A stretch of 64,000 nt of DNA from assembly GCA_964270895.1 (NCBI GenBank), contig OZ185437.1. The stretch is one strand, 5' to 3'. Position 1 is the first letter of the stretch. Every line of letters begins with the position of its first letter. The DNA comes from Podarcis filfolensis. Lineage: Eukaryota. The notes under the pieces are model-generated. The model did no database searches and had not been told where the DNA came from. It worked only from the letters and a program-made list of their open reading frames with translations. Below are positions 701 to 60,863 of this stretch, piece by piece. The translations under genes and the position numbers were made by a program.

Positions 701-3700
701 TGAGTCTTCTTTGATAAAATTGCTTGCTACATGGGAAGAGAGAGACTCTCCAGGTAAACAAAAGCATGGAGGAGCTAGCAGAAAAACACTGCTCTTGAAT
801 GGATCTAGTTTGGAAAGTTGAGCTTATATTTTATGACATTGAAGAATGGGTTGGGGTATTTGAGGTGTTAAGGGATGGGTTGTACCTCTGGTGGGGGACA
901 CATTGTGCTCCTTTTGGGGTAGTTTGTCCACCCTTGTTCCCCACCCTGCACTCATCTCTCACTTGTGGCTCCTAGAAGCTGTCAGTGTGCAACAGTGGCC
1001 ACACCCTTGGAACAGCTTTGACTGACTGGCTAAATCAAGTGAGGGTAGATGAGGGGTCTCAAACCCTCAGTGAGTTAGGGACCTCCCCTGCATGTGAAGG
1101 CAGGCTCTGGGGGACGAGACCAATGGTGGGTCCAATGGTTCAGAAGGCAGTTTCCTTCTGCATGTGCTGTAGAGGGAAGTGCAGGGCAGATGGGGCTCAT
1201 CAACCTGGGAAGGTAGCCCATCCAGGAGAAAGAAAACTTTGATCTTAAGCTTCCACTGCTTTGTGGGACATCTTTGGGAGAAGAAACGGCTAAGGAGTAA
1301 ACCCTGTACAACTTTGGAGTGTAGTCCTGAAGGCGGTTGGATGGTGCCTTGTAAATCTCTTTCTGGCAACTCCTGCAACCAAGCTGGTGTGAAACACATT
1401 GCTCTGCTTTCCTTTGGGCCACACCAGCAAGGCCAAGAGGAGGGTCTTGTCATCTGGGTAGCCCAGGACCTCCATACACACTGTCCAGGCTTGTGCCCCA
1501 GGGAGGTCACTTCAGTGCTGCTAATGCAGCAGTTTGACTCCCCCCCCCCGGAGGCGCACTCCATTGTCTCTCAAGACAGATGCCAACAACAATCTATGAG
1601 TAACATTTCCATTAGCACTGGTTGCTAAGATGCATCCTGATCCTCAAAAGAGATTTTGTTGGAAGATGAGAATAAGGAGGTATGCCACTGGGAACTGAGG
1701 GTTGAAAATATGATGGTTGCCCAGTCCATCCATTTTAGCCAAGAAAGGTAAGTATGGGCATATGCACTGCATATTAAAAAAAATATTGTTGCTGCCCACA
1801 GAATATAACATTCTAGCTATGAAACAAATGTTCCATCAAATTACTGCAAGTAATAAACAATTCAGTCAAGTTGCAGAAACTCAGGCACCTTGGTTGTAGT
1901 GTTGCATCCTTGCAGGCTACAGTTGGGTACAGTCTCTGTCTTTGGCTTATGTCATATGCAGTAGTACAATAACAAGTATCATCCAGTTGTTTCAGTCTAG
2001 AGGTTCTTGTGCCATAAAGTAATCTATTTGTTGGTGTGACACAAGTGAAGTATTCGCAGCAACTGGCAGCTAAGCATTTGGTTTATTAGGGAAATATACT
2101 ACTTTATTTTGCAGTTTAACTGAATACATTTAAAATGATAAAAGCACAATTACATACAGTTTTGCTAACCACCTAACAGAAGGCACTAAATAATAATTGC
2201 ATAGACTTAATTTACAAGATTTAGCTTTCACAATATAACACGAGAGCTTATTTACAGTATATTGACATATGGCATAACATCAATTAATGACCACAATGGG
2301 GTTGGCTTTCTTGTTGCTAGCAGTTTGTAAGCAATGAAATTAAAGCCCTCCACCACCTTGGCCTATGGTGGAATTTGTCTCCAGTCCTCTGAGAATGCAA
2401 AATTCTGTTAATATGAATGGAATGAATTATAAGACCCAAGACAACAACCTGAAAAAGTAGCACCATTCTGACACATTCAAAAAGTGTTGTTGGGAGAAGT
2501 GTCCCCCAGGTGATTGTCTTAAGATACAGTAAACTAAGGATGAGGAGTCTGTGGCCCTCCAGAGGTTGCTGGATTTTAACTCTTGATCACTGGCAACAAT
2601 GGCTGGGGCTTATGGGAGTCCAACAATATCAGGAGGACTACAAACTCTCATCTCTGTAAGTACACAGAAAAAGCATATACACATATACAAAAGCTTATAC
2701 TAACAAATAAATATTGCTCATCAGCGGACAATATCGAAATAAAATAAATTAGAAAAAAAGGTTATCAAATGTGCACTTTCTACTTTGAGCCTAGTTTCAA
2801 GTATATTAAAATTAAAGGTCTTCAAACAGCCCTTAGACAACAGCCCTTTAAATAGGCTGAAAATCATTTGCAATCCTCTCTTGAAAGGTAAGCTATACAC
2901 AGACACACCCCAATTTCCTAAACAGATATCACTTCATATAGGAAAACCACATACAGATAGCCTGCATGATTGTGTGTGGTGAATGAATGCACAGCAGTTT
3001 CACCATTTGTACACATATTGATAAGATGATGATTGCTTCTCGCTGTTTTGCTTGCAATGGCTTCTCACTGAGTATATGCAATGTGTAAACATGGCAAAAC
3101 AAGTATTTGTACAGGAACTATTGCAGTGAATCAGCTTTAAGACTGCAATTAAGCCTGGGCACACTTGCCTCGCAGTAAGTCCCACTACGGTCTTACTTCT
3201 GAGCAAACACGTAAGATTACACTGCACAAGAACAAAGCACACTATACAAAGAGGCACTTTAAAAAACAAGAACTGGTCTGTAAAACTTCAAAAACTGCAT
3301 TTGTTATGCAGGGAAGAGCTCTTTTTGATTGTCATTTCAAAAGTTACGAAGAAATAAACATGTAGTTGTGCATAATTGCAAATTAGGGGAAATAATATGG
3401 TCAAGGCATGTCCATTATAGTAGTGCACTTTTTATTCTAGCTATCCATCGTCCTTTAATGCTGATTCTATCTAGGTATTTCGAACAAGAAATCTTATCAG
3501 TTGGGGCCAGTTCACATCACTCCACATGTGGCAAACCATTCTTTTCCTGTCCAGATTAAAATATCAACCTGCAGTGTCCAACAGGTCAAGCCACCACCCA
3601 AATCTCAAGTTGTTTAGTATGAAAGTACAATTTACACTCAAGCTGAACTACTCACCTAACCCATTCATTATGGGCCTGGCGCAAACTGGGCTGGAAAACA

Positions 3701-3956: not shown

Positions 3957-4111
3957 NNNNNNNNNNNNNNNNNNNNNNNNNNNNNNNNNNNNNNNNNNNN
4001 NNNNNNNNNNNNNNNNNNNNNNNNNNNNNNNNNNNNNNNNNNNNNNNNNNNNNNNNNNNNNNNNNNNNNNNNNNNNNNNNNNNNNNNNNNNNNNNNNNNN
4101 NNNNNNNNNNN
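3957..4111. other. Assembly gap (155 N) in the presumptive TBXT 3' UTR
   Basis: Run of N, ~380 nt downstream of the stop codon. Confidence 0.99.
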
Positions 4112-5712: not shown

Positions 5713-5845
5713 CTGGAGCTGGTTGGTGGTCCGGTACTGTGACTCATAGGCAGCATGCTTGTTGGGGGTGGAACACCTAAACTGGACCAGTTGTCATGAG
5801 ATTGGAGCATAGAAAGGCAGGCTGAAGAACTATCACCATATGCTG
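5713..5845 (-). CDS. TBXT: Brachyury coding exon 7
   Basis: 133 nt, translated by hand: (T)AYGDSSSACLSMLQSHDNWSSLGVPPPTSMLPMSHSTGPPTSS. Acceptor tttacag|CAG, donor AG|gtaggc. Confidence 0.96.
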
Positions 5846-8155: not shown

Positions 8156-10516
8156 CTAAAAAAAAAACCACAAACAAAAAGTCTCAAATTGACATTTTTA
8201 CACATTTTTTTCATAGTCACACAACATTTCTACCAACTCCCCAGGGTAGTTCATAATGGTTTCTAGTGGGAAAATGGCTCAGAATTGAATTAACAAAACA
8301 GCAACTAAACAGCTCACACACTGCAACAGCATGCTTTGAAATCATTCTCTCCACCACAACCTCCCCCCACCCACTTTGCCTGATTTAAATGCCTGGTTTT
8401 ATTATCCTGTTAAGGAAGTACATAAGAGGGGGGGTACACTAAAAACAGTTATAAAAAGTTTCAGGTTTCTGGGTAACACAACAGTGAAAAATACCTTGAT
8501 CATGAATATCACGGTCACATTAAAAACAAAGTAGTTAACATCTTTTGAGTTATTAATCGAGCACACATAATATAACAGCAAAGGACTTGTATCACACCTT
8601 TACCAGTTGTTATTCAAGGAAACACAAAAAGTTAAAATTTCATATGTGGGAAACTGCAAGTGTTGCTTGCAGAATTAACAGAAGACAATTTGGTTTCAGG
8701 CTCCTTAACTGCTCATTATGTTTTTCACATAATGTAGTATTTGAAAACTTATCACTCACTGATATTTAGCCATTGTGAAATCTATGTCCACCCACCCCCC
8801 GCACACACTGTTTTGGAAATTATTTATGCTGAAACGGGTGTTTAGAGGCAAATACACATTTCCATCTTTGGAAATATATATATATATTATTTTATATTCA
8901 CCACTTGAGGGTTTTTTATTAACTTGTTTATAAATTTTCCTAAATAAGCAAATACATTTGGTGGGCTTGCCTTCCAGCTTTTTTGGGAAACAATACTTAA
9001 GAGTTACTGCTGATCATGCAGTTTGATTAGTTGTACTACTTTGGTATCAGTTATGAAAATAACACTTTTCATAAAAAGTTGACCCAGAAACTGTAATAAC
9101 AACAAATTCTGAATCTTCTCCTGAGTTTAATTGGATACTGAAAGCTAGATATATAATAGTTAGATTAAACTTTAGCAACTAGTTCAGACGCAACAGGCTA
9201 GACTGGTGGTTACTTATTACATTCTTAGAAATAGGACACATATAAAGCAAGATTAACATTTATATAAACATACACAAGCAACATTCTTTACCCTATTTTG
9301 GCAACTAAGCAATCACATTATTTACATTCCTTTACACTACTATAAATGAGAAACTGTGGGATTTTACATTAGGGTATAGGTTAAAGGTATACAGCAACAT
9401 AAAATAATATCACATATTAGTCCATGGTGAAGCTACTCTTGATATTTCAACAGTTATTTTCACACATTATGTAATCAAGTCTGGGATTTTCCAATACTCT
9501 TTTCAGCTGACAGGGGGCGGGGGATGCAATCAAACATTTTAAAATATGGATTTTTACATCATCTCTCAATTTACAGCCTGTGAAAAGTTGTTTGGTGTTA
9601 AAGGTACCCAATCTAGGTTCTCTTGAGTCAAACAGGGAGTTTTTCAAAATGAGAATGTTTGATCATGCTGTCACCTTGAAACTATTTTCTACATTAAATA
9701 TCCTCAAAATCTTGCATGTATTGAAAATCTGTGATGTTTTATTATATTTTAGCCTGATACATTGTGTCAGCACAACACCTTAAATTTGATGAAGGTCTTA
9801 AACACATCTTATTTAAAAACAAATTCCACATAGTTCAGGGGTGGGGGATTGGAAAAAAGTCCAACATTTAATTAGAATTTTCTACAAAGAACACTGTAAT
9901 GTGAAGGCATAAGGTCAGAAACTACAGCAGTGTTGCTCTTCTTTGTCTGAATAAAAGGATAATTTTAACTAAACAAGTTCATTTGACATTCAATTGAAAA
10001 TGCAGCAAAGGGGTTACTTTTTACTAGAAGTATGAAATAAACAAGATATATAGAATTATTTGTCCAAACCTCCATGTTATAAAGTCAACCCTTCCTTAGA
10101 GTTGCAAGGGACTCTAAGGATCATTTAGTCGAATTCCCTGCAAGGCAGGAATATGCAGCTGTCCCTACTATGATTAAATATCTCTGGCTGATAGCTGCTC
10201 AAATCTTGTCTTCAAAACCTCTTTCCTTCAAACAAGGAAATACACAATACACAAAACTTACTCGGCTTAGTCTTTTTATACTTACATTTCTCCCAATTTA
10301 CCTACCTTCCAGACACTCCGCTGCTTTTTAATTGTCCAGTTCTCGGTGGAGAAGAACAATTCTTGCATCTCTTTCACGGCATCCTTTTAAATTCTTGTAC
10401 ACAATCAACGTTTCCCACTACCACCTTAGCATCCCCTTCCTTAATGCCACAAATTTGTCCTTTGGTGCATCAAAGAAGGAAAATCCATGCAGGGCTCGTC
10501 CTCATTTTGTTCCTAC

Positions 10517-11880: not shown

Positions 11881-12474
11881 TAGCAATAAATGAACGAAAG
11901 GGGTAACAATGAGTAACACTGCAGCCTGGGAACAGGGGTCAAACCATGACCCCTGATGTAAGGAGTGTTACACTTACACAGTAGCCCCACAGTTCTAGTC
12001 TATAAAATATAGACACAGAGAGACACACACAGATCCTCTTTCTGGAAATACATGCCAATCTCTTCAGGAGGCTCAGAAAAACTTTCCTTGAGGTAACTGG
12101 CATCTACTACCGCCAAATTCTGGAAACCTGTTCATATAGTGCAAAAGAAAGGGAGACGCTCCTCCAACCTCTCAGTACTGGACCTCTGCACATCACTGTG
12201 CAGTGAACTGGAAATGAGACTAAGGCTGTAGCCTTAAGCACGCTTAGTTGAGGTTAACTCCAAGCAAATCAGCAGCGTTCTGTCCGCAGGGTGGGGAAAA
12301 CGTGCTTAGAAAGGGCGCGCGAAGGTGCTGCATTTCGTTATTTCCCATTTCGGGAATGGGGCCTGTTCTATAGTGGCACCGCTCTCGCTTTTGAGGCGGG
12401 CAACCGCTTGAGGGAAAGGTTAGGAAGGGAAGGCCGCGCCCCCCCCAGCCCCGCCGCCGAGGGGTCTTCCTCAC

Positions 12475-12739
12475 CTGTCCGCCTCCGTTGAGCTTATTGG
12501 TGAGTTTGACCTTGCTGAAGGAAACGGGCGCCTTCATCCAGTGCGCGCCGAAGTTGGGCGAGTCCGGGTGGATGTAGACGCAGCTGGGGGCCTGCGGCTC
12601 GGGCTTGCCGCCGGGCACCCACTCGCCGTTCACGTACTTCCAGCGGTGGTTGTCGGCGGCCACGAAGTCCAGCAGGAAGGAGTACATGGCGTTGGGGTCG
12701 AGCCCGGACACGCTCGCCTTCAGCACGGGGAACATCCGC
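12475..12739 (-). CDS. TBXT: Brachyury coding exon 2 (T-box)
   Basis: 265 nt. Acceptor ctgcag|G, donor CAG|gtgagg. Encodes [88 protein letters not shown]. Confidence 0.98.
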
Positions 12740-13918
12740 CTGCAGCAGGGAAGGAGACGCGAGGAGAGGCTCGGTAAGAGGCGGGCGCGCCCTCCGGCTA
12801 GGCCTCGGGGCCCCGAGAGAGAGCGAGGAGCGGGGAAAGCCCGAGCCAAGGGAGCGCCCGGCTTCGCGGAGAGCAAGGCCTCCCTCGGGCTTCCTTTCAC
12901 ACAGGTTCTTCAGGCCTCAATCCTCGCTCAAGCCAAATCGGTCCGATTTCACCCCAACAGAACTAGGCTGTTGGGCTGTTGTTCCCACGCACGGCTGGAA
13001 AGAATCCCCATTGGGGTTTACTTCCAAGTAAACGTGCATGGGTTGAGGCTGGTCGACTTCCACTGGCTTCCACTAAAACTTAGTGAAATCCACGGGACGG
13101 GATTTGCCATACAGGCTCGCCGTCCATTAGGGACCCCAACCCGCCTTATTTTGAAAGGAAGCGCCGGCATCCGTCCGATTCCTGGCGAATGAACAGTTTT
13201 AGGGACGAGGTGCAAATGTCTTTAGGAAATTACCACGGAGGTGTAAGCAGCCCATTGCCCTCAAACTATATGGAAGCCAATTCCATTGAAACGACTTGCG
13301 AATTGCATTTTGTTCTTCATTGCCTAGGTCCTTTGATTTCACTGAAATTCAATTGCGAGTAATGTGCACGCTTGTAAACAAGAAACGGGAGAAGTTTTTG
13401 TTTATGTTATTTCTCCGATTTGGTTTTTAACGGGCTTACGGTGACATATAATGCTAGTCTTTAGGGTGCCGCAAGACCCTTTGTTGCTGTTGCTGCAAAG
13501 GACTAACAAAGGCTACGCCTCTGGAAATGACTGCAAAGCGTTGGATCCAGACCTTAGTTCCCTGCTTCACATAATCATGACTAACTTTTCACAGTGGTTT
13601 CAGTGGGACCTAGTTCAGGTAGCTTAGTTAGAATCCAACCAAATACTAAACAATAGCTGTTTGTAGGTTGATGGGAAATTCGCAGAATCAATAAACTGGA
13701 GGAGACAACATCACAGAGCAAATAGGCGGGGGTGGAAGGCAGTAGTTTTTAAAGACTGTCATAAAGCACTAGGGCCCAAGTTCTGAAATCAGTATAACAT
13801 CTTACAGACAATAAGATGTAATGTAGTGTTGCTTTTATGTCAAAATGTTTGGAGCAAGAGTATTGAAGACTCTTTTTAAAAGATTGTCTGGAACCAGTTG
13901 CTTAGGGTGGTATTTAAC

Positions 13919-16175: not shown

Positions 16176-16484
16176 CATAGGAGTCAACTTCTAGGAGCCG
16201 AGGTCCCTATGCCCCATGAGCGTAGCCAAGGGGGCGGGGGCAGCTGCCCCCCTAAATCAAGTAAATCAATAAAAAGCTGCTGCCCCCCTAACATGAAGTC
16301 TGCCCCACTTAATATAAATCCTGGCTACGCCCATGCTTCGGAGTTGGGGGGGCCAAAATTGAGCCCCCTCCCCAGTTGGTGGGGATTGCAATTCAAATAG
16401 TTTGTGTGCGGCCGCATCTTGTGATTGATTTTATTTGGGAGGGGCTTACCTGCCCCCCATATCTGAATCAAGTTGGCACCCCTG
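16176..16484. mobile_element. hAT-like MITE containing a second nested MITE (16215-16335)
   Basis: Outer imperfect TIRs CATAGGAGTCAACT / AGTTGGCACCCCTG with a degenerate 8-bp TSD (ctgacgtg / ctgccatg). Inner TIRs CATGAGCGTAGCCA / TGGCTACGCCCATG. An uninterrupted relative of the outer element is at 20522-20697. Confidence 0.65.
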
Positions 16485-16788
16485 CTGCCATGTAAACTCA
16501 AGGAAGGGAAGAAGTGGACAATTTCCCACCCTTTCCTACCAATGAAAGGTCGAATTATATGTTCTATTTTAACTCAGAAACAAAGTATCTGCGGCTAATT
16601 ATGGTGACTTCCGCGGGCGATGGTTCTTTGAAAGCTCAGACACCGCTGGAGAGAAGAGAGACAGGGACCTGGCCGTATCCTCAAATTAATGGTGGTAAAA
16701 CGCAGGAGGTGGGACTGGGTCTGCTGCATCCCCGGGGGCAGAATTGTGCCTTGGGACTAACACTGGAGTAAACAGGCCTGGCTGCAAC

Positions 16789-46760: not shown

Positions 46761-48194
46761 TTACATCCTGCCTTTCCTCCAGTGAGCTGAAAGCAGTGAG
46801 CATGGTCCCCCTCCTCCCCATTTTATCTTCACAACAATCCTGTTAGACCGAGAAACAGTGATTGATCCAAAGTTACCCAGTGAAGTTCATAGCTAGGTGG
46901 GAATTGAACCCAGGTCCATCACTCTAACTACAACCTACAAATTGATCATACAAGTAGCAGAAACCAAATTCAAAAAACTGGGCAAGAGTGTGTTGACATT
47001 TGAATGAGTGCTATACCTTTTAAAAGCCAGTCCTACAGGCTGGGATGGTGAATCACATAGGAAAGAATAGAAAACAGACTCCAAAATACAAAATAAGCTC
47101 AGACTTGTACCAGCTTTCTTGTGTTATATTGGCCACATTTCTCAAGAATAGTATTTCTGAATGAGAGGAGGAAGAGGAGCTAACTATACTTGGATTAAGA
47201 TGGAAAATGACAAAACAGGCATACACACATACATTAAATCACCCTAAAACGACTTGGGGAGAGAAGATTTCCTCAGCCTCCTTTGTCTATAATGTGCATA
47301 AATGGCTGGGGTCAACAGGGATTTGAGGAGAATCAGTTTGGGTGAGAGAGACATCCATTGGTGCAATAATTATTGAGACCTGATTACAAGTCATTGGTTC
47401 CAGTAAGTGAACATTTTCACTGCTTGTTGCGAAGCAGTACCAAATACTGCAGTAGGTGGAGAAGATTCTGCAGGTGTAGGAGCTCTCTATGTCCAGCTTT
47501 TGCCCAGAATAAGAAAGGCTTTGCTGGGTCAGGCTGCACTTAATAAAATATTACATTTCCAGCAGCAGCCAGTCTGTAGTCAATGGCTAAGACTTGCCAA
47601 AATCAGCTGCTAACATTGCCACTGAGCTTCTAACCCCCTAAGTAGGAAACTGTGGTACACTATAAGGCAGTAGCAGGTGGAGGGAGGGATTCAATTACCA
47701 AAATTAGTAAGAAGCCTGGAAGATTTGCAATGACCTGTTCAGATAAGTCATTTATCAGTGAAAACTCTTGCTTTTCCATTTGCAAATGTGGCTCCCAGGT
47801 GAGAATATTCCGCCCCACTCCTGCCAAGAAGTATTTCTCAACAACTCAAAAACGTGTAGAATGAAGAAGAGAAGTAAAAGAGCAACTTTAGAAATTGAAT
47901 ATTGTATGGCATACATGGGAAAGAATGGTTTGTTTCCTAAATGAAAAAAACCTTACTTTATTTGTAATGCTCGCTCTATTTATTTTCTTCGTCTACAGAT
48001 ATTGGTAAAGAATAAATGCTTTCAAAAATGAGCAATGTCAAGATGCCGAATTCAGCACATATCAGAAAGCCATGATTTCAGAAACAAATCGAATTAAAAG
48101 ATTTATTATTATGATGATTCCAGTTGTTGAAAATATAAAGGTGGAACAGTTCACAAAATCGCTTGGCCTCATTTGGTTTACTCGCCTTGGCTAC

Positions 48195-48358
48195 ATAGGA
48201 AGCTGCCTTACACCGAGTAAGACCATTTGTCTCTCTAGGGTCAGCGTTATTTATAGCAGCTCCCCAGGATTTCAGATGGGGGTTCTCTGTCAGCCCCACC
48301 TGGAGATGTCTGGGATTGAATCTGGAAACTTCTGAGTGCAAAGCAGAAGCTCTACCAA
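48195..48358 (-). mobile_element. Squamate tRNA-derived SINE (Squam-type)
   Basis: Minus strand tggtagagcttctgctttgcactcagaagtttccagattcaatccc...aaggcagcttcctatgt tail. Confidence 0.65.
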
Positions 48359-50902
48359 GCCTTTCTGAAAGCTAGATGTACATAGCTTGCTTTATTTATT
48401 TCTTGCTTTTAGCTCTCTTTCTATCACACTGTAATCTCCAATAAGATTTGAATTCAGTTCCAAGAGGCCCTTAGGCATTCCAACAATATAAAGGGTGCAT
48501 CTCTATTTCACCATTTTATTTTCTTCTCACGTATCTGCGAACACTTTCCCCTGCTTCCCTCAGACACACAGTAATAAGGATTCAGCCAAGATATATTTGT
48601 CTTAGGCCAGGCAAACAGGGGCCCATGTGGCCTACCTTTGACTGGGGTAGGATGAAAGGCTAACAAGGCCCTCCTAACGGTTTGGTGACATCTCCACTAA
48701 TCCTCCCTCCGTTGGGAAACAATTACAGAAGTCACCCAGAAGTACCTGCAGGAAAGAATTTCTAAGGCAAGTCCCAAACAGATTTCAGTTTCAGTAAAGT
48801 AAAACGTTTTCTTCGCCTTCTAAATAATGTCGCGGGGTTTGTTGGGAGTTTCTCAGGAATGAGGAGCACTACTGATCCCGGTCTGGCATGGAATTAATTT
48901 ATGGATATCAGTACATGAAGATGTGATGATTTAGCTTAGACAGATCTTTAAAGGGCAAGACAAATTTATGAAGGATTGAGTCTTGTCAACAGCAGTTAGT
49001 CATAACGTGTTGGACCTCCAAGAAAATGTTGAAGTATGAAGTGCTTCTGTTCCAGACAGACAGCCATGCCTTCCTCCAAAATACTCCATTCCCCCTCCCA
49101 GCCGCCCCACAACAGTGAGCATTCTGTGGCCACTGGGCTGTTTGTGGAGTCCCCCCTCCCTTAGTTTCCCGTCTCAATATTTTTGTACTTCAGCAAGCTT
49201 TCGAGGCCTCCCCAAGCCGGCCAGTATCTCCTTGTTGAGTGGTGCTCTTTTGCTACATCAGCAATAACACCTACAACCTGAACAGCAGAAATAGAGGGAA
49301 TGATGGTTAAAAAGAAACCTTCATATTCCGAGTGTATACACCTCCCGGCACCTGGGGCTGGGGGCAATCATCTGTCTGTCTCCAGTATCACCTTCATGCT
49401 CTGATTGTGGGCTTTCAAAGGTATCCAATGGCCCACTTTTCAGAAGCAAAATGCTGGGCTATGTGAACCAATTCACTACAAGAATTCTTATGTTACCAGC
49501 TTAGCGCCTGTCAAGGGTGGGAAATGGAGAGTGCTTTGCCAATTCACTCCTTTTTCACTCCCCAACTATATATCCATCCCTGAGGCCCCAGGGGGAGAAG
49601 GAAAGGAGGTAAGTGCTGCTTTTCCAAATCTACCCTAATGCCCCTCCAAATTCCAAAACTTAACAGTCCTGAGGAGGAGGAGGGTGAATAATGGAATGTA
49701 TAACCCAGAAGCTGCATTCAGGGTTGGGGTGGATAAAGAGGTAATGCTACCAACTCCAGCAGCTGGAGTGAGATACAGGATCTGCTCCCTCTAATTGCAA
49801 CCTGTTTATTGTGCCCCTTTGATGAGCTACATGACTGTCTCCAAGCTCCTCTAAGGCCATGTTCTATATACAACTTTGGTGTCAGAAATGGTATCAAGCA
49901 TGCCAGTTTGTGGTGACCTTGAAAATTGTGCTCTTCTCAGAAAGTATCTTATGATTATGACTTTTTTTCAGGACATGATCATTATATGCTAATGTTCTAC
50001 CACCTTTATTCTGTTTGGCTTTCTTTAACATGCTGTCAATCTTCAATCTTACACCAGAGCGTGGCTCCTTGGTCACCTTTCAGGGGGCATCGAGAGTCTC
50101 ATGTTCTCTAAGCACCCACCAAGAACAGACTGAGGTGAATCTGCAAGTTCCTACTGAGGCATAACATGTAATATTGACATATTCCTTTTCACTTCAGCAT
50201 GGTAACTGCCATCTAAAATGTAAAAAGTTATCCAGAAAGTTTAGAAACTTTATTAGATACCTCAAAGCTCATAATGATAAATGGCATGTCAGACTGCAAA
50301 ATCATGTCTCCCCTTTTGTTAGAATTCAGAGAATGCAATAAATACTAGAGTAAACAATTCAAGTTGCAAATTAACCCTTTAGCCAGATCCAGGAACCTGA
50401 CAACTTGCCCAAAGCACACTGCTTGGTACAGCGGACTGGAAGCATGATGTGATCATTACACAGAAGTGTGAAGAGCTCAGCCACCCTTGCATCCTTTTTT
50501 CAGGGCACAGCTGGTGAACAGTATACAGTTAAATGGAGAAGGGCAAGGGGAGATGGTTAAAGGGTCTAAGGCAACTTTGGATCATTCATTCTTCTTTTAA
50601 CACTTTCTTCACTGCTCACCCTCTCTCCTAAGAACTCCTAAGTACATGTTATTTAAAGAAAGCTAAGTTCTGGACTGTGGTATCTCTGTCTGCTGACCCA
50701 TGAGCTCAGAAACTCCAAGATGTGACTTGGGCCACAGATTCTGCACATGTTTCACACAAGACATCTTCACATGTACCAAAATAGTGACCCATCTGGTGTT
50801 ACTCAGTTCTGAAACATTTCACAATGTGAGACAAGTCGCTGGGTCTTGTTATCTACAAGTGGCAAACATAATACAATAATATAGAATATAGAAACATGTG
50901 TA

Positions 50903-51117
50903 CAGTGGTACCTTGGGTTACAAACACTTCCGGTTACAGACTCCGCTAACCCAGAAGTAGTACCTTGGGTTCAGAACTTTACCTCAGGATGAGAACAGAA
51001 ATCGTATGGCAGCAGCAGGAGGCCCCATTAGCTAAAGTGGTACCTCAGGTTAAGAACGGTTTCAGGTTAAGAACGGACCTCCGGAATGAATTAAGTTCAT
51101 AACCAGAGGTACCACTA
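50903..51117. mobile_element. Tc1/mariner MITE, same family as 21668, opposite orientation
   Basis: TA-CAGTGGTACCT...GAGGTACCACTA-TA; the internal sequence is the reverse complement of the 21668 copy. Confidence 0.85.
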
Positions 51118-53145
51118 TATAGTATTAGCTGAACTCAGTTTAAATGAGCCAGAGAGCTTTTCAGATGTTGAGCATATTAAAAAACACCTATATTTTATCA
51201 CCAGACTCTTCAAAATCTCCCATTTATGTTGAAGAGATCAGCCAGAATCCAAATGGTTGTGCTGAGAGATTCCAAAGATGAAATATAGTTTCAGAGCTCC
51301 CAGTCACCGCACTCCACTTTTGACTATAGCTCTACCTAACACCTGACAAACCACTCCTAAAAACCAGAGATTCTTGAAGGAGCAGATTCTTGTGCAGGGC
51401 AAAGCTCTGTGATCAGAAAAGGAAACTAAGCAACCCTCTTGAGCGCCATGGTAGAAGCAAATGGCATTAGCACACCACCTGCCCCTTTGCATCCTGACCA
51501 CAGCAAATACTTCCTGTTTCCTCACCTCAGACAGGAAACTCTGTGCCACGGTACCCATTGCAGAACAGTTCCAGTCTCACAGAGGAAAAAGGGAAAGCAA
51601 GGGTTTAATCTGAATCAAGGTTCAAGCAGGACTTAGCCACGGAACCTCTTGTTGATGCCAGGTAATGAACAAGAGAGGGCACCAGACGTTGTGTAGACAG
51701 GTGTTCCCTAAAACACACAGGCATCTAGGGATGGGAAGATGCTTCCAAGCTGGTTGTCCCACCACTACTAGTTTAAGAAGTTAAATACTGAGCAGAGCGC
51801 CCTGCACAAAAGGTGTTTTGTGTACAATTGTGCTCCCTACCCCATGAAAGCAATTGTTGAGTTATCTACCTATAAAAATGTAGAATATTGAATCAAAGGA
51901 GTAAATAATTCTTATGGTCGTTTTAGGGAAATCTTCTAGCCTGGAGGGAGTCACTTGTGAATTATAGGTTGAATCCTTCTTAAAGTAGACTTACTGAAAG
52001 CAACAGGACACAACCTGATATCAACACAGTTCAGGAAGCCAGAGATTTTACAGGACTATAAAATGTAGCTTCATTTAGATATGTAGAAAAGTTAAAGCCT
52101 ATTTAAGCATCACATGAAGCATCTTATCAGAGAAATCTCCCACCCACCCATCAAGCTGAGTTAAGACTGCTGACTATAATTAGAAGCCTCATAAAGTAGA
52201 GTGCTTAGAAATCCAAGGTTATAAACAGAAACACGTATTTGCTTACTTTTTTCAGGCTGCTACTGTTTTTAAAGCCATCAACAGGCTGGACTGGACTGGT
52301 TCTTGCTGAAGTTGACAGAGGCAAAGACTTTGTAGCTAACACTGTCGATTAAAAGCACAAAGTATTTAAGTCAATTGTTTTTTGTCATTTGTTGTTGACT
52401 CTTTGTGATTAATAACTCAATTAAGTATTACATATTACTAGCAAATTTGTATTTCCAGACGCCTATTGCTCTTGCTTCTTCACTCCAAAGTTTTGTTTTT
52501 GTTTTGTTTTAAACACATTTTTATTAAAGATTTCTTGGTTTACAAAAGTATGTGCAATGTCTCTCTTTTCAAGTTGCATTTTCTACAGATCAGTTTCATT
52601 TGTTGAGACATTAGTACTACATTAGGAAGAAAAGGGGAAAGAGGTGGAGGGGGCATGGTGAGTGGGGGTGGGGTCAGGTGGCAATGTTTCTATTCTACTC
52701 AGTGCATGTGTGGGGTTTTGTGTCAGCGTCGGTTGTGTGGGTTCTCTTTACTATTCGCTTGTATTCCTTTGGTGGTGAGAGAGGTTGGGGTTGGCCTAGG
52801 GTGTGGTTATTCATTTGTGGTTGGCTGTGGTGGTCTTGTTTTCAGGTGTGAGTGGGGTGGGTGGGTGTTTTTGGATCAGGTTAGCCATATTGATTTGTAT
52901 GCTGTTGGTGAGTTCTTGTTGTTGTCTTGTTGGGCTGTGTATGTGATAAAGGGGAGCCATACTGGGGTGAAGGCGTCTTCCTCTATTTGTCCCTGTGTCA
53001 GTTTCAGTTTATCGGTTAGTTTTTCTAGTAAGGCTGTTTCTATACTATTTGATACCATTGGTCCATTTGATACCTGACAGGTCTCTCCAGTGTCTGGCTA
53101 TGATGTTTCTGGCTTCTGAGAGTAGGTGGGTTAGGAGCTCTTTAT

Positions 53146-53767
53146 TATTTTTTTTTCAGCTTCACCCAGAATACACTTTTAATGTACATTAAAAAAGTGA
53201 TCATCTTGCAAATTGTTTTGCAAACCAAATATACAATAGCTTGGAAAACAAATAGTTTAGAAAATGAATGCCACCATGTAAAAAGACTACTTAAACCTAT
53301 AACAGTAGAGTTTCTGCATGGCTCATCTTTACAGCTTTCTTACTGCTTCATTAATATCAGTAATCTGTTCCTTCAACTGGCTCCACCATTCTGGATTTAG
53401 AGAGATACCTTTTCTGCCAGGTTTCATTTCACCTTCTTGATACATCCAGTATTCTCTAATATCAATTAGGACTTTACCTTTAAAATCACGAACACTGACA
53501 TATCTCATTTTACCAATCTGAAACATATTCTCATCTCTGTTGCTACTTTGCTTGGAGGAGGCAGCACCTTTGGAGCTTTCACCATTCTTCTGTTTCTTCA
53601 CAGGCTTTTCAGGCACTGCTTGTTTTTTCATTTTCACCTTTTTGTCAACTTCACTGTCCGAATCACTGGCAGATGAGCTTGAAGACACAGGTTCTTTTGA
53701 TTTCGACATTGTTCCACTCAGAGCCCGCTGCTCTCACTGCCTTCCTCTCGGCTTGCCTTTTTTATCC
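53146..53767 (-). pseudogene. SUB1: Processed (intronless) retrocopy of SUB1/PC4 mRNA with 5' UTR, CDS, 3' UTR and A-tail
   Basis: The uninterrupted 126-aa ORF 53329..53709 is clearly PC4 ([44 protein letters not shown]). The 3' UTR resembles SUB1, has ATTAAA ~20 nt before an A9TA tail, and the copy is flanked by a 16-bp direct repeat. Confidence 0.93.
53329..53709 (-). CDS. SUB1: Intact ORF of the SUB1 (PC4) retrocopy; coding status uncertain
   Basis: ATG to TAA, 126 aa, no stops or frameshifts. Several substitutions at normally conserved residues; no promoter evident. Confidence 0.45.
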
Positions 53768-55082
53768 GTTATGAGCTCTTTATGATGTGAGTGGGCTTCA
53801 CTGCAAAGTTGAATCTAGAGGGGGCAGTTTCTAGGGTAGAGCAGGCAGATAGGAGGCCACTTTTCTCCTGCCTGCAATTTTCCTCCTGGAGCTCCCTCTC
53901 AGGTGGGTTTTTAGACTCTGCTGTTTTTGGTTGTACAATCTCAAAAATAACACACACCCCCCAAAAAACCCCTAGCTGGGATAACAAAATTGATGGAGGG
54001 GGGGACTGCCAGAGGAAAACGTCATCATCAGGGAAAGCAGTTGTTCAATACAAGTGTGTACTTGAGGGTACTACTCTGATCTGAATGAATCTGCTTCCCA
54101 CCAAGTTCATTAAATCTACACTGTTACCTATTTGGATGAGATATTTTTAGCTGTTCTAAAACGAAAACATTATAAAGATACTCAGCTTTTTGCCTTTATA
54201 TCTGGAAGCTTTTCTTTGAGCTTTGAACCATGAATGCCTGCCTGGATGAGTTTCCAAAAGTTTTCATTGTCTTGTTGGTTCTTTAAGATTCCAAGTTTAG
54301 TTAATTCATTCTGCAATCCTATAATCTTAGGAGAGAATGAGAAAGAATAAGAATAAGAGAGGCATATGGACAAGCACCAAAACCAAATCTAACATGGTTT
54401 ATTTTATCAAGTATCACATCTCAAATTAACCAGATACTGAATCGTGGGAACTGTGATACTTTTGGATATGCTATTTATGGTGGACAGAAACTGCCGGTTA
54501 GATTGGATTTTGCAAGGTTTGTAACGAAACCAGAAGCATATTGCTGAATTGTGTGTTTCCCTCTAGTCTTCTTTGCAGTTTATGGCATATCCATTAGCTA
54601 AAAAGCAGGGGCACAAGAGTGTCCTGGTCCCATTGTGGCTGCCTACCTGCCTGCAGATTAAGGGCCATCACATTAGCAGGATATATCTGATCCCTGTCAA
54701 TTTAACAGGATTTGCATTTTATGTTGTGTGCTAAATACAGAAGTGGCTTCTAAGTGAAAGCAAATACAAATTGATTTAAAATATTGGTTTTGGGCATACA
54801 GCTTATAGTTTGCCTTGGTATATTAAAACAAACTCCAGTCAAAGAAGTTACAATATGTAATCCTTTTTTAACTGCATCTGTTCAAAGAAACTTTTATTTA
54901 CAAATTTAAAAATCAATATAATCAGTCAGACTAGCTTTACTCGTTTCCCCCTTTAAAACAGACAATTGGATTTATTTTCTTCATCTGCTCTCATGAGTGT
55001 AAATTTCTTTTTCTTTCTGCAGAAGGTGAATATATTTTACATCTCTTCAGCTACCTTTACTGAGTGAGTTGGAAGCAAATGA

Positions 55083-55510
55083 GTTAAACAACAACAACAA
55101 CAACAATAATAATAAAATTATACACCGCCCTTTCTGGTTTAAAAACCGCGCTCACGGCGGCTGACAGCAAATATAAAACATTGATTAAGATGCGACTTTA
55201 AAACTGCATAAAACAGCATAAAATACAACATAAAATGCAGCATCAATATCAATACAATTCAAAAATTCAGGGGTCATTTTGGAAAAAAACAAAACAAAAC
55301 AAAAGCCCCAGTCAGTAGACATCAAATGATCACCAGGGCTAACTGGCCAAGTTGGTCCTACTAGGGCCAGCAAGGAGACCAAGGAAGAATTAAAATGTAG
55401 GGTCCCAGGAAGGGTTTCTTCATCGAAAAGGAAAAGGGAAAAGGGAATAGAGGGTCAGGCTAATTCAAATTGAAGGCCACGCGGCCTTCAACAATGAATG
55501 AAAGGTCTCT
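55083..55510 (-). mobile_element. LINE 3' UTR and tail (L2-like)
   Basis: Minus strand ends tgtcagccgccgtgag...agggcggtgtataa plus (ATT)/(GTT)n. Confidence 0.55.
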
Positions 55511-58500
55511 TGCTACAGACTAACAGGACTACTTTCTTGGAATTGGCAAGGAATCTGTTAAAGTTGCCATATACCTACAATCAAATTAAACAACTCAGTA
55601 ACGGAACATAGCATACAGGGAAACAAACCATTAGAGAAAATTGCACGTAATGATAATATGTAAAAATATATATAAGTATCAGTGCATACACTACTTTAGA
55701 ACTGAAAGTCATTTTTCTCCATGGTTATGACATGTATTCCTATTATGTATCCAAAAGTGAAAATCTGCATTTGAGAAAGTACTTTAAGATATGTAGATTA
55801 AGAGCTAGTTCCTGAAGATAAATTGCATTTTCACAAAGAGATGTGAGTAACTGTTTAAGATCAATTTGTAGTTCAAACAAAACAAAACAAAACAAATCTC
55901 CATAAGGGCAGCAGATCATCAAGAAGATCTGCATAAAAGTCAAAGTCTTACCCACTGTTTACTCCTTAGTTGATGCTGTAACTTAAAGCAGATATCTGCT
56001 AACAGCTGTGTAGCCAATTTTTAAATTTCAAGTTTATAATTTTCCTAGTGCTAACAAACAATTGTGGGGTAGTAGGGAGACTTGAACAGATATTAACAAT
56101 GGGAAACAGTTGCAAGTTGTGGTCCTTCTTCTGGTTAGAGGCCTGGGAAAGTTAAAATCAATGTTAAGCTATATTGTGCTTGCTGTCTGGATACACAGAA
56201 GTCTGTAATGCCCATGAATTTCAGAAAGGATTTAATTGCTTTCAGTGCTCAGTGATACTGGTGTTCATCTTGTGTTGAGCAAGCAGATATATTGTGTTGT
56301 GTTTTAGATTACTTTTTCTGTGGATGAACGCTTTTCGTACATTATGGCTGTAATGTTTTATATAATATGTTTAGGCACTTCACATTTCACTATTGTAAAT
56401 TGCTTTTGGAAACCTCTCGATACGTGAATTGCTTTGGGATGCTTTTGGATGTGTGATTATAATAAACTAACTAAGTAACCAAGGCGACTTCCAGAAACTC
56501 GTTTCTGGCTTCTGGCTGCTTGAAGTCCAGATCTGTAGGGTACTTCACTTTCACATTAGTCGCTTCTACCGTATGTGGCTGGCAGTGACAGATACAGAAC
56601 CAACATCCCGTAAAAAAGAACACTTGGGTATTCCAAAGAAAAAGATAGCAATCTTTCTTGGGATACTTTCTAGTCCTTATAACACAGTCTAAAACCATCC
56701 ACTTACAATAAAAAGAGCAAGCTGAGACCTGTACCTTACCAGGTAACTTTTTGAGTGTGGCATGGACTCCAGGTATTTTGTATCATGAGACAAACTGCAG
56801 ACGGGCACTCTGGGACTGGAGATACACTTTTTCAAAAGAAGATAAAAAAAAATTTGGTCAGTATTTTTTCCCTAGTAGCTGGGAAACAAAGCTCAAAACA
56901 AATGACAAGTAAACATCCAGCCACAGGAAGCCATTAACAACAGTGGGCACCAATTAGGGCTCAGCAGGTATCCCTAACACCCCCTGGTGTTTTTGCCCCA
57001 CCCCAAATGCTTTGACATAAGACTCACAGACTCAGGCTTAGGAAGCAGGCTGTTCCATTTACTCAGCAATTTGTAGCCACATATTCCCATTGATAGGCTT
57101 ATAAAACCTGTTTGTAGTCTTTTTTTCTACTTCCCTTCAAGTTTGTGTCATTAGAAGGCACAATGACTGTCTGCCCAAAGGAAAATACTTTGGAGGCAAG
57201 AAGAAATTAAGCAGAGGCAAGAACCTCCTTTGTCTTCTCCATTTTCTTCCGTGTACAACAGTTATGTAGATTTAAAGCAATATTTGTTAAGAAAATGTTT
57301 GCTTTTTTTAAAAAAACAACAACCCTTCAAGCCTCTTCTTTATTGAAAATACTCTCAAAAAGGCAACACCTTAGCAGAATGGAAGGATCAAAATTCAGCA
57401 GAAGGCATAAGTAGCATACAGCTCAGTCCTAAACATGTTCACTTGGAAATGTTTTCGGTGCACAAAAAAGGAAGTGAGAGGAAACAAGTGAGCCTGAAAC
57501 TTGCCATGACTCAGCCAAGAAGGAGGAAACGACCATTTTCTGTTACATCTGAACCAGGCCACTGAGTTGGACCATTGGCCCATCAAGCCCAGTGTTATCT
57601 GTTCTGAAAGCAAAGCATCTACAACACCTTTCCCATCACCTCTTCCCTGATCCTTTTAATGAGCAATTTCAGGCACCGAGCCTAGAACCATTTGCATGCA
57701 AGCTCTCAGTGAGTTACAGCCCCACGTCCACAAAGTCACTGATTAGCCTTAGAATATCCCTATATTCTCAGCCTCGTCCCCATCCACAACTGCGAAAATA
57801 AGGATAATACCAGACTACCATGCAGAGTTAATTTGTTTATTAAATGTGTATACCGACCGTTCAGAGTGGTTCACAACATAAAAAGGCAAGATAAAAAACA
57901 AACAAACATATAATAAAAACAAACCAATAATCTCACCTACTTAGTATTTATGTAGCATTTCACACACACGTATCTTGTTTTAACATTGACAACAATCATG
58001 GAAGTTTAAAGAGGGGCTGAGATCATATTGCAGACAAGTGGCGGTGACTGAGAAAGTCTGGCCTGCTTAATGCAATCTAGTGGGTACATGGCAGAGCGAA
58101 GAATCAAACTGGAGAGTTCCTGATCCCTTGTTTTGTCTCCTAGCAACTATAGGCTATTTTGGAAGGTACTATTTTAACAAGCTCGTCATCTACTGATCAA
58201 AGGTAGGCTGCTAACGGTTGATTGTTAAATTGTTTTAACTCTTCTCATTATAACATCATTTTTGTATAGGACTTTTGCTGTTGTGCTAATTATTTATAAA
58301 TGGAAAAAAGTGAACCGGCACTTAAATGTGAGTGAATCAAAATTTAGGCATTAATTTGGTAACACTGGAGAAAAATATAAACTTAAGAGCAGTTCCTTTT
58401 GAAGCAGGCCCCTGTGAAAAAGCGAAGAAACTGATTCATGCACTGGACCTGTAAATGGATTATGAAAGCTAAAGCAAGCCTTTATGGGGTGGCAAGGGGG

Positions 58501-60863
58501 GGCAGCCTTTTACTACCACTTGATTGTTCTAACTTTCTCCGCACTTTAAAACTTTATAGTACCAATAAAGTTACTGAAATTCAAATGGTAGGGAGAAGAG
58601 CATTTGCCTGTATTTCCTTGTCATTTCATCATAGCCTAGCTCTGTTTTATTGCCGAACTCTTCCAGCAAGGAGGAACAACAAAATAAAGATTTGGAAAAA
58701 GTATTGAGAGGTAGAATATGCAGTTTTGCAGAGTGTTTTTGAGCCCCCTTGGTTGGCTCATTGAGCCTCAGAACATACAGCTAACATGCCTAATGAGTAG
58801 AGCGGCTGTGTTTATCCCCAAAGAATTACAATTCATCCATTTTGCAACCTCCCGCATCTGTTGCAATGCTGTGCTACCTTTCTTGTTACAATAGAGTGGT
58901 ATCATTTCAAAGTAAGCATAGTAAATTGATTGTTGCCTTGAGGATGCTGTTAACTTTGCTGCCTGTATGCTAGCCCTTCTGTTTTATTTGAAAAATTCTG
59001 CAAGGTCCACACTTTGCTGTAGGCGATTGTATATCTGTCTCTGTGATATACAGCATTCAAAAAGAAATAACAGTCCAGCCAGGAAGAGATATATATAGCT
59101 GTAATGGAGAAAATGGAATATAGCTGTAATGGAGAAAATCACACATAATTTGAGATTTTGACAAGGACTGGAACCTCCAGACACTTTATATGATTTGGCA
59201 TTTGACATACCACAAAAATACCAAGTATTTTCAAGACAACCCTTGTCACCAGCTTGGCAAATCTGGAACGATACATGAGCTGATAAGACTGATAGTCTTT
59301 ACTTGGAGTTTGTTATTTTAACTCATATGCAACTACTCATTCTATGTGCCTATACTATAGTTTTGCTTTACGTCTTTTTTGCTTGTTGTTATAATTGTTC
59401 TCTTGGTTTTATATACATTGTAAAATGAGCTAAAAATGTAAAAGAAAGAAATACTGAATTAGGTTGGGGGTGTGGACAACTGAACATTTGCATTAATATT
59501 TTAAAATATGAGACAGCAGAAGTACATTTGGGCCTAAGCAGGCAGGTGGTGGAGCACTTGAACCACAAACCTATAATTCTGAATGAAATATCAAGTGTCA
59601 GGGAAGGGCTGTATCACCGCTTGTCTATTACTAATAATAAAAAATATGTTTATATGGCGCTCTTCTGCTTATATAGCAGAGGTGAAGAACCTGTGGACTT
59701 CCAAATGTTCTGGGACTCCATCAGTACCAGACAGCATGACCATTGGTCAAGGACGATGGGAGTTGCAGTCCAGAAAAATCTGGTGGGCCGCAAGTTCCCC
59801 ATCACTATTATAGAGCAGTTTACACCAGTGAAAAATACAATACACAACAATCATGCTGTTAAAACAATACAAACTAGCCAACAAAAGTTATTTTCAAAAA
59901 AAACCCCACACAGCAGAATTACACTGTAAAACTCTACTGAAATAAATACATTACAAGGAAACCATCCAAATTTCACTCGGGGGAGATGCCACCACTACAA
60001 GGCCCTGTGTCTCACAAGGGCAGTTTTTATGGATGGCTGTAAGAATTCCCTTCCTTTGGAAATGCTGCTCCATCTTATGTGGAAGCAGCAAGTGTAATCA
60101 GTCCACAGGGGAGAGGCCTACCTAGCTCACCTGTGCCTTCGTAGGTACCTGACATCTAGAGCACTGGATGGAAGATGGTGCAATAAAAGCACTTTTCCCA
60201 GAGTCCCAAGATTATCTTGATGCTGAACTCTGCTGCTTCCTCGCTACCTGCAATGGAGCTATTAGTACATCCCCCCTACCCTGGAAGTACACTGTCTCGT
60301 TTCATCCGGCACTATCGATGTAACAAACTAAAACTGCACAACCCACCAAAGCTGCCCATTCAACCACAATCTGCATTGAAGTCCCAAATGTGTTGTGTGG
60401 GACCTGTATTGCATTTCCCAAATATTTTCTCAAGTACAGATTTTTAGATAGTTCTGGCGGACTGGAAAATGTGAGAGCACTGTAAAAGTCATCCACATAC
60501 AGTTGAGGTTTCTGGAACCCCTAATGATCTGTTGAGTTACTTTCTCTGCCAGAGCAATGGACCGTACCCCTTGTGAACCACCCTGAGATCTACAGGTATA
60601 GGGCGGTATACCACTCCTGAATTGTATTTTCGTTCACAGATTCCCATTTCCTGGCTAACTCTCCCATACTATTCTATCATCCGGTGTTTATTCTCCCTCA
60701 TGCACATCTCATTGGCTGCCTTTGGTAGGGTTGGGAAAAGCATAGGAAGAAGGTGTCTCGGCATGTGTAAAGGTGCCCAGATGTTTGCAAGGCATGGGTG
60801 TAGCTAGGATTTATGGGGGGGCAGCCTTCAAGTTAGGGAGGCAGAACCTCAGTTAGTTAAATA

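Follow-up and report, generated by a model that had tools for sequence, protein, structure and literature searches.

Processed pseudogenes made by L1 enzymes are recognized as intronless, full-length cDNA copies with a poly(A) tract behind a polyadenylation signal, an A-rich nick site and a target-site duplication (TSD), for which ~7-20 bp are expected. They are common in older L1 copies. In mice, SUB1 is known to have given rise to processed pseudogenes recently (PMC11551321). In L1 template-switch chimeras, such as U6/L1 and the tripartite B2-U6-L1 and WEIRD-SINE-MGL elements, the copy of a cellular RNA shares its orientation with an L1 3' part, and both lie within one outer TSD. The known chimeras are direct fusions within one duplication and the tripartite ones are very rare, while double template switches have been documented for LINE reverse transcriptases (PMC2104539). 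The phylogenetic criterion for such a chimera is that its parts arrive together, with no L1-only stage (bioRxiv 10.1101/2025.02.02.635956).

Here, we analyzed a locus with likenesses to both systems in a 64,000-nucleotide stretch of Podarcis filfolensis DNA (the window). On the minus strand, an L1 3' end (52493-53145 and 53768-53795) is split by a 622-nt SUB1/PC4 cDNA (53146-53767). The features, all on the minus strand, are:

52478-52492, minus strand: outer TSD copy adjoining the L1 tail; AACTTTGGAGTGAAG in element sense, 14/15 identical to 53796-53810 and the same in P. raffonei
52493-53129, minus strand: L1 3' part with the broken ORF2 end, 3' UTR, AATAAA (52520-52525) and A-rich tail (52493-52510)
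53130-53145, minus strand: inner TSD copy adjoining the SUB1 poly(A); L1 ORF2 sequence, ATAAAGAGCTCCTAAC in the window
53146-53767, minus strand: processed SUB1/PC4 cDNA, with a Pfam PC4 match and four Rhineura SUB1 exon blocks
53146-53156, minus strand: SUB1 poly(A) remnant, nine A's plus TA, abutting the inner repeat
53157-53328, minus strand: SUB1 3' UTR, with ATTAAA at 53178-53183
53329-53709, minus strand: SUB1 coding sequence, 126 aa plus stop; open frame, Pfam PC4 9e-22
53710-53767, minus strand: SUB1 5' UTR
53768-53783, minus strand: inner TSD copy adjoining the SUB1 5' end; L1 ORF2 sequence, sharing with 53130-53145 a single site in the L1 references P0160, L003 and L004
53784-53795, minus strand: 5'-most 12 nt of the truncated L1; (P)HSHH versus HLHH in P0160
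53796-53810, minus strand: outer TSD copy at the L1 truncation point, where L1 homology ends; AACTTTGCAGTGAAG in element sense

Both repeat pairs were found at exactly the coordinates given in the earlier note. A repeat search of the window returned the outer pair with 14/15 identical positions, and the inner pair is 15/16 identical. Allowing up to two mismatches, the inner 16-mer occurs at two sites only in the 64 kb, with 0.07 expected from shuffles. Repeats, Pfam match and L1 alignments together bear out the anatomy first proposed, and we confirm that an intronless SUB1/PC4 cDNA lies inside a 5'-truncated L1 3' end on the minus strand, enclosed by two concentric TSDs. The nest is located upstream of a T-box gene ~38 kb away.

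The cDNA stems from a spliced SUB1 mRNA. No lacertid parent SUB1 gene was found among the cluster members listed, and the Rhineura SUB1 gene (L002) was used as a stand-in for the parent and compared exon by exon. Positions 58-608 of the retrocopy form four blocks that match, with 90-96% identity, four separate exons of this gene (3000-3076, 5717-5839, 9246-9370 and 16336-16585), which are spread across 13.6 kb. ATTAAA is situated 21 nt upstream of the poly(A) remnant, and the tail is shorter in P. raffonei than in the window. The duplication that brackets exactly the cDNA measures 16 bp and is of the size expected for L1 retrocopies, and the pre-insertion site, CACATC/ATAAAG, fits the TT/AAAA-like nick consensus only in part, at four of six positions. 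The copy resembles an L1-mediated processed pseudogene nested in an older repeat, the target here being a dead L1 fragment. Nothing essential separates it from that class; the only oddity is its landing 12 nt from the L1 5' end, and the host is a lacertid lizard, not a mammal. The protein closest to the window SUB1 frame is a 'p15-like' protein of P. raffonei (P0005). An exact-sequence look-up of the window SUB1 protein found no record, and literature searches for SUB1 retrocopies in lizards or for retrocopies in Podarcis yielded no specific report.

The two L1 pieces were compared separately, with no joined sequence and no L1 consensus, to an L1 ORF2 protein (P0160) and to two independent L1 DNA copies (L003 and L004). 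P0160, for which an exact-sequence look-up found no record, carries an RVT_1 domain (2e-32), and the L1 family assignment rests on its best match among solved structures, human LINE-1 ORF2p (1.5e-44 vs 1.8e-21 for R2). Window positions 53770-53793 translate as HSHHKELI and align to residues 821-828 (HLHHKELI), 53143-53069 align to residues 825-849 and 53040-52879 to residues 860-913; tblastn placed residues 825-913 on 53143-52879 with 80-87% identity in three different frames. The inner repeat accounts exactly for the overlap between the matches to residues 821-828 and to residues 825-849. In a library search without length limit, a 60-aa frame of the L1 fragment matched P0160 at 5e-22 with 87% identity; a Pfam search of the short L1 pieces alone gave no match. 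On the DNA level, the L1 3' part is 85% identical to L003, and 53784-53795 reads CACTCACATC vs CACTCACACT in L004 and CACTTACACC in L003, the first two C being ambiguous. L1 homology stops at 53795/53796. Because P0160, L003 and L004 run unbroken across the SUB1 insertion site, the two DNA copies with one 16-mer each, the 28 nt at 53768-53795 are L1 sequence and the 16-mer is single in L1. Hence the earlier proposals that these 28 nt derive from L1, now checked with individual L1 copies in place of a consensus, and that removal of SUB1 and one inner copy restores a continuous ORF2 frame are both upheld. The restored peptide had been given in the right frame, but its residue written as '.' is E.

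In its outer parts the element resembles other 5'-truncated L1 copies. It retains the last ~93 ORF2 codons, the 3' UTR and the AATAAA signal with an A-rich tail, AAAACAAAACAAAAACAA, and the 15-mer (14/15) stands directly outside both ends. A 1-nt microhomology (G) is possible at the 5' junction (compare PMC2912911). It departs from them in its tail, which is (AAAAC)-like instead of a plain A run, and in its family, a squamate L1 lineage sharing only 25-30% identity with human ORF2p across the RT region.

The orthologous Podarcis raffonei locus (L001), which was aligned pairwise with the window, carries the same L1 plus SUB1 nest, and both insertions predate the divergence of P. filfolensis and P. 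raffonei. In P. raffonei the inner repeat is perfect (16/16), the copy at 53130-53145 reading ATAAAGAGCTCATAAC like the other copy; the inner mismatch of the window is therefore private to its lineage. The outer G/C mismatch is present in both species, and P. raffonei has one further change in the 53796-53810 copy. As the inner mismatch is absent from P. raffonei while the outer one is shared, the two must have arisen at different times, and the earlier suggestion that one mismatch in each pair points to similar age is not supported. Relative to L003 and L004, both species also have a 1-nt gap near 53066/53067. Near 53041 P. raffonei has an in-frame stop, and the underlying base change is present in the window too, along with an extra 1-nt gap at 53041/53042. 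By the time the two species separated, the L1 ORF2 tail had already been broken twice and the SUB1 frame was still intact. A 357-aa gene model spans the locus in P. raffonei; no convincing exons of it were found among the open frames of the window.

Two separate, successive L1-mediated (TPRT) insertions into one site are in our judgment very probably the best reading of the nest. In the first step, L1 RNA would have been reverse-transcribed at a nick in this region upstream of the T-box gene, and an early stop would have left a 5'-truncated L1 3' end of 665 bp that has an A-rich tail and is flanked by a 15-bp TSD. In the second, enzymes from some active L1 would have nicked this dead L1 copy at TC/ATAAAG, a site 12 nt away from the L1 5' end. 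Reverse transcription would have been primed on the poly(A) tail of a spliced SUB1 (PC4) mRNA and would have run through to the mRNA 5' end, thereby duplicating 16 bp of L1 sequence with one copy on each side of SUB1. We favor this reading because the inner junctions carry a full TPRT signature (an intronless cDNA from 5' UTR to 3' UTR, poly(A) and a 16-bp TSD), because the duplicated 16-mer is single-copy in P0160, L003 and L004, and because the outer junctions are likewise TPRT-like, with the L1 end at 53795/53796, AATAAA, an A-rich tail and the 14/15 15-mer. Prior knowledge favors it as well, processed pseudogenes in older L1 copies being common and tripartite template-switch chimeras very rare (PMC2104539). 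One mismatch and two lesions further hint that L1 may be the older element: the outer mismatch predates the species split, when the inner repeat had none, and the ~280-nt ORF2 tail already had the shared 1-nt gap and the stop-making base change, whereas the 381-nt SUB1 frame had no lesion. By our Poisson estimate, the chance of that lesion pattern at equal age is ~0.07. Several points count against sequential insertion. Under random insertion into a 665-bp fragment, the position of SUB1 12 nt from the L1 5' end (28 nt with the repeat) has a chance of ~4%, and the target sites TC/ATAAAG and TC/AACTTT fit the TT/AAAA consensus only partly. No L1-only or empty site was seen in P. raffonei, the sole orthologue examined. 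Since this orthologue has both elements, we infer rather than observe that they arrived at different times and that each did so at this locus.

The proximity of SUB1 to the L1 truncation point would be accounted for by a single TPRT event, in which the reverse transcriptase left the L1 RNA, copied the full SUB1 mRNA from its poly(A), went back to the same L1 RNA at a point 16 nt behind its exit and ended after another 28 nt. The product would be a tripartite L1-mRNA-L1 chimera with an internal duplication mimicking a TSD. Double switches are within the repertoire of LINE enzymes (PMC2104539), and a cDNA end templated by ATAAAG, being rich in T, could anneal to poly(A). However, in described chimeras the foreign RNA is fused directly and forms the extra 5' end of the L1, with no internal duplication, whereas here the cDNA is flanked by L1 on either side, with 16 bp of L1 sequence present twice. 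This duplication, perfect in the orthologue and of normal TSD size, brackets exactly a full-length polyadenylated cDNA. Microhomology is absent from the return junction (SUB1 5' end GG vs L1 CC), and an outer mismatch older than the inner one, together with an L1 disabled while SUB1 was intact, points weakly to different ages. The internal junctions having a complete TPRT signature of their own, the double template switch considered in the earlier note is not supported, and we regard it as decidedly unlikely. Alternatively, SUB1 could have inserted first into an L1 elsewhere, and a transcript of the interrupted L1 could then have been inserted here by retrotransposition, with its 5' truncation falling 28 nt upstream of SUB1. 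The inner duplication would then be inherited and the outer one alone made at this locus. The anatomy fits such a history equally well, and it would account for the joint presence of both elements in the only two species seen. On the other hand, ATTAAA and poly(A) of SUB1 within the transcript should stop most transcripts before the L1 3' end, and truncation within 28 nt of SUB1 demands a smaller coincidence window than sequential insertion does. As the SUB1 insertion breaks ORF2, enzymes would also have to be supplied in trans. Moreover, a single place in the P. raffonei assembly encodes P0005, and a further lacertid 'p15-like' protein did not turn up, both in protein-level searches as distinct from genome-wide DNA searches. 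We give this history a slim chance.

Under sequential insertion, the nest is an ordinary two-step nested insertion and involves no new mechanism. On that reading the L1 fragment merely served as landing site, so the nest does not link this L1 family to the making of the retrocopy, contrary to the earlier statement that it does so either way; any active L1 could have been the source of the enzymes. The locus has little importance beyond annotation. It is a clean, datable case of a lacertid processed pseudogene produced by L1 enzymes, and could be used as a presence/absence marker for lacertid phylogeny with the states empty, L1-only and L1 plus SUB1. If an L1-only stage never existed, the nest would be a rare candidate for a double template switch returning to the same template.

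The retrocopy frame is open but evolves neutrally as a pseudogene, without purifying selection. It is open in both species, with 126 aa in the window and 122 aa in P. raffonei, where the deletion is in frame; the PC4 domain differs by only one changed codon, and NCBI annotates the P. raffonei copy as protein-coding. These observations would suit a functional retrogene held by selection, a possibility that concerns the consequence and not the origin of the insertion. Against it, the two frames differ by eight nonsynonymous changes and one synonymous change (omega 1.9, not different from 1; Fisher p = 1), and P2S, D90Y and Q108W alter positions at which every other vertebrate in the comparison has the same residue. 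The chance that so short a frame stays open under neutrality is 0.3-0.6 (substitutions only). A selected function of the retrocopy consequently seems improbable to us, and the Podarcis raffonei 'p15-like' protein-coding annotation (XP_053238356.1) represents a neutrally evolving retrocopy inside an L1 fragment.

The unit at 52478-53810 consists of a SUB1/PC4 retrocopy (53146-53767) inside a 5'-truncated L1 fragment (52493-53145 and 53768-53795). The anatomy claimed in the earlier note, namely the repeats, the SUB1 insert and the L1 surround, is all present in the sequence, with the following features.

52478-52492 and 53796-53810, unit on minus strand: outer 15-mer repeat, 14/15 identical
53130-53145 and 53768-53783, unit on minus strand: inner 16-mer repeat, 15/16 identical
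53178-53183, minus strand: polyadenylation signal ATTAAA, 21 nt ahead of the poly(A) remnant
53146-53156, minus strand: short poly(A) remnant, directly adjoining the inner 16-mer

The 622 nt between the inner repeat copies carry an open frame of 126 aa (53329-53709) that matches Pfam PC4 (9e-22) and shares 83-92% of its residues with SUB1/p15 proteins of vertebrates. Four exons of Rhineura floridana SUB1, spread across 13.6 kb of genomic DNA, matched the insert at 90-96% identity, so the segment lacks introns; the Rhineura gene is a stand-in for the intron-containing parent. Judged by its sequence, the insert is an intronless processed SUB1 cDNA. Its 58-nt 5' UTR had no match in the 3 kb examined upstream of the Rhineura coding region.

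The short L1 pieces alone gave no Pfam match, and no second copy of them was found within the window. Each piece was compared individually with the L1 ORF2 protein P0160 (913 aa) and with two independent L1 DNA copies, L003 from an ENA contig and L004 from assembly GCA_947686815.1. P0160 contains an RVT_1 domain; among solved relatives human LINE-1 ORF2p ranks first (1.5e-44), with R2 proteins far behind. A 60-aa frame at 52879-53058 matched P0160 with 87% identity across its last 54 residues (E 5e-22). Window 53770-53793 (HSHHKELI) matched residues 821-828 (HLHHKELI) and window 53143-53069 matched residues 825-849, and therefore the part of the protein covered by both pieces corresponds exactly to the 16-nt repeat. 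L003 and L004 (85% and 77% identical DNA, respectively) both cross the insertion site unbroken with a single copy of the 16-mer, preceded by the motif CACT(C/T)ACAC as in the 12 nt of the window. L1 homology ends at 53795/53796, where L1 and the target may share one nt (G). These comparisons bear out the proposal that the sequence surrounding SUB1 is L1 and, on alignment, continuous once SUB1 is removed. L003 is the 728-bp contig k141_51950 of metagenome assembly ENA ERZ27260045 and has a lizard-type L1 3' end; its start (1-26, …GATGTGTATAAGAGACAG) looks like a transposase-library adapter remnant. The contig probably represents DNA of the host within a metagenome, the adapter having been left untrimmed.

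The orthologous locus of Podarcis raffonei (L001, CM049752.1) aligns colinearly to window 47293-59091, is 98.3% identical to it when only substitutions are counted, and contains the same nest of L1 and SUB1. Its presence in both species indicates that both insertions are older than the split of the two lineages. The protein closest to the SUB1 frame of the window is the P. raffonei product XP_053238356.1 (122 aa), which has the unusual residues P2S, D90Y and D120N in common with it; NCBI annotates this retrocopy (L001 6001-6369) as protein-coding 'activated RNA polymerase II transcriptional coactivator p15-like'. Exact look-ups of the window SUB1 protein and P0160 gave no match. Between 30 and 68% of the 31-mers of the stretch around the unit were present in 22 sequencing runs from eight organisms.

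The inner 16-mer does not recur in the 64-kb window at up to two mismatches (chance expectation 0.07). This repeat is perfect in P. raffonei, which indicates that the mismatch at 53134 is private to the window lineage, whereas the G/C mismatch between the outer copies occurs in both species, P. raffonei having one extra change. Hence the argument that one mismatch in each repeat implies similar age falls.

Both junction pairs bear a complete TPRT signature: the 3' end is A-rich or carries poly(A), 15-16 bp of target are duplicated, and the nick site starts TC/A, in partial agreement with the TT/AAAA consensus. The unit is an ordinary nested retro-insertion, very probably the product of two sequential L1-mediated events, which is also the simplest account. 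A 665-bp 5'-truncated L1 would have arrived first, and L1 enzymes would later have copied SUB1 mRNA into this fragment at a point 12 nt inside its 5' end. The age signals, an older outer mismatch and a disabled L1 beside an intact SUB1, fit this order weakly; by our Poisson estimate, a broken L1 with an intact SUB1 at equal age has a chance of about 0.07.

It is improbable that the composite of L1 and SUB1 formed elsewhere and was then mobilised as a unit, since the SUB1 polyadenylation signal would fall inside the transcript and ORF2 is interrupted. Less probable still is the alternative put forward in the earlier note, a double template switch within a single event. The one point in its favour is that SUB1 lies so near the 5' end of L1. 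Under random insertion such proximity has a chance of roughly 4%, but nested insertions are a priori so much commoner that this does not tip the balance. Moreover, an internal duplication of normal target-site length surrounds exactly a full-length polyadenylated cDNA, and the return junction is without microhomology. In the bipartite and tripartite L1 chimeras on record the parts are fused directly, the 5' end is made of foreign RNA and there is just one duplication (PMC2104539; bioRxiv 10.1101/2025.02.02.635956), whereas here an internal duplication brackets the cDNA. The suggested tie between a specific L1 family and retrocopy formation found no support.

Relative to L003 and L004, the ORF2 tails of the window and P. 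raffonei share a 1-nt gap and a base change, and thus the L1 tail was broken twice before the split. The base change creates an in-frame stop in P. raffonei; in the window an additional 1-nt gap lies at this position. The SUB1 frame, which is longer than the L1 tail, had no disabling changes at the time of the split. Since then it has accumulated eight nonsynonymous changes and one synonymous change, with an in-frame 12-bp deletion in P. raffonei, and omega (1.9) is indistinguishable from 1. No constraint is evident in the P. raffonei retrocopy. The probability that a neutral copy of equal length would stay open is 0.3-0.6, counting substitutions only. Given these values, the open frame is best read as a young pseudogene and not as a selected retrogene.

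Divergence between window and P. raffonei is uneven, with 3.3% (101/3052) in 53133-56213 versus 1.1% (96/8658) across the rest of 47293-59091; a two-rate block model gained 29 log-likelihood units. The left edge of the block and the L1/SUB1 junction are at most about 150 bp apart, so that divergence is 0.5% in the L1 portion and 3.6% in the SUB1 portion. The block is probably a haplotype block reflecting deeper coalescence or introgression, and the proximity of its edge to the junction is probably coincidence.

A 357-aa P. raffonei gene model without Pfam hit covers all of L001 1-12369 (CM049752.1 74152228-74164596) on the SUB1 strand; if it holds, the unit would lie in an intron, in sense orientation. 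No convincing exons of this model were found in the window. An open frame at 12247-12909 (minus strand) encodes a T-box domain (Pfam T-box, 3.9e-30), and the T-box gene at about 4-15 kb is probably TBXT/Brachyury. Near its 3' part, 3957-4111 consists of 155 N, an assembly gap or masked sequence. This gene and the L1/SUB1 unit share a strand, and read in that direction the gene lies some 38 kb further downstream.
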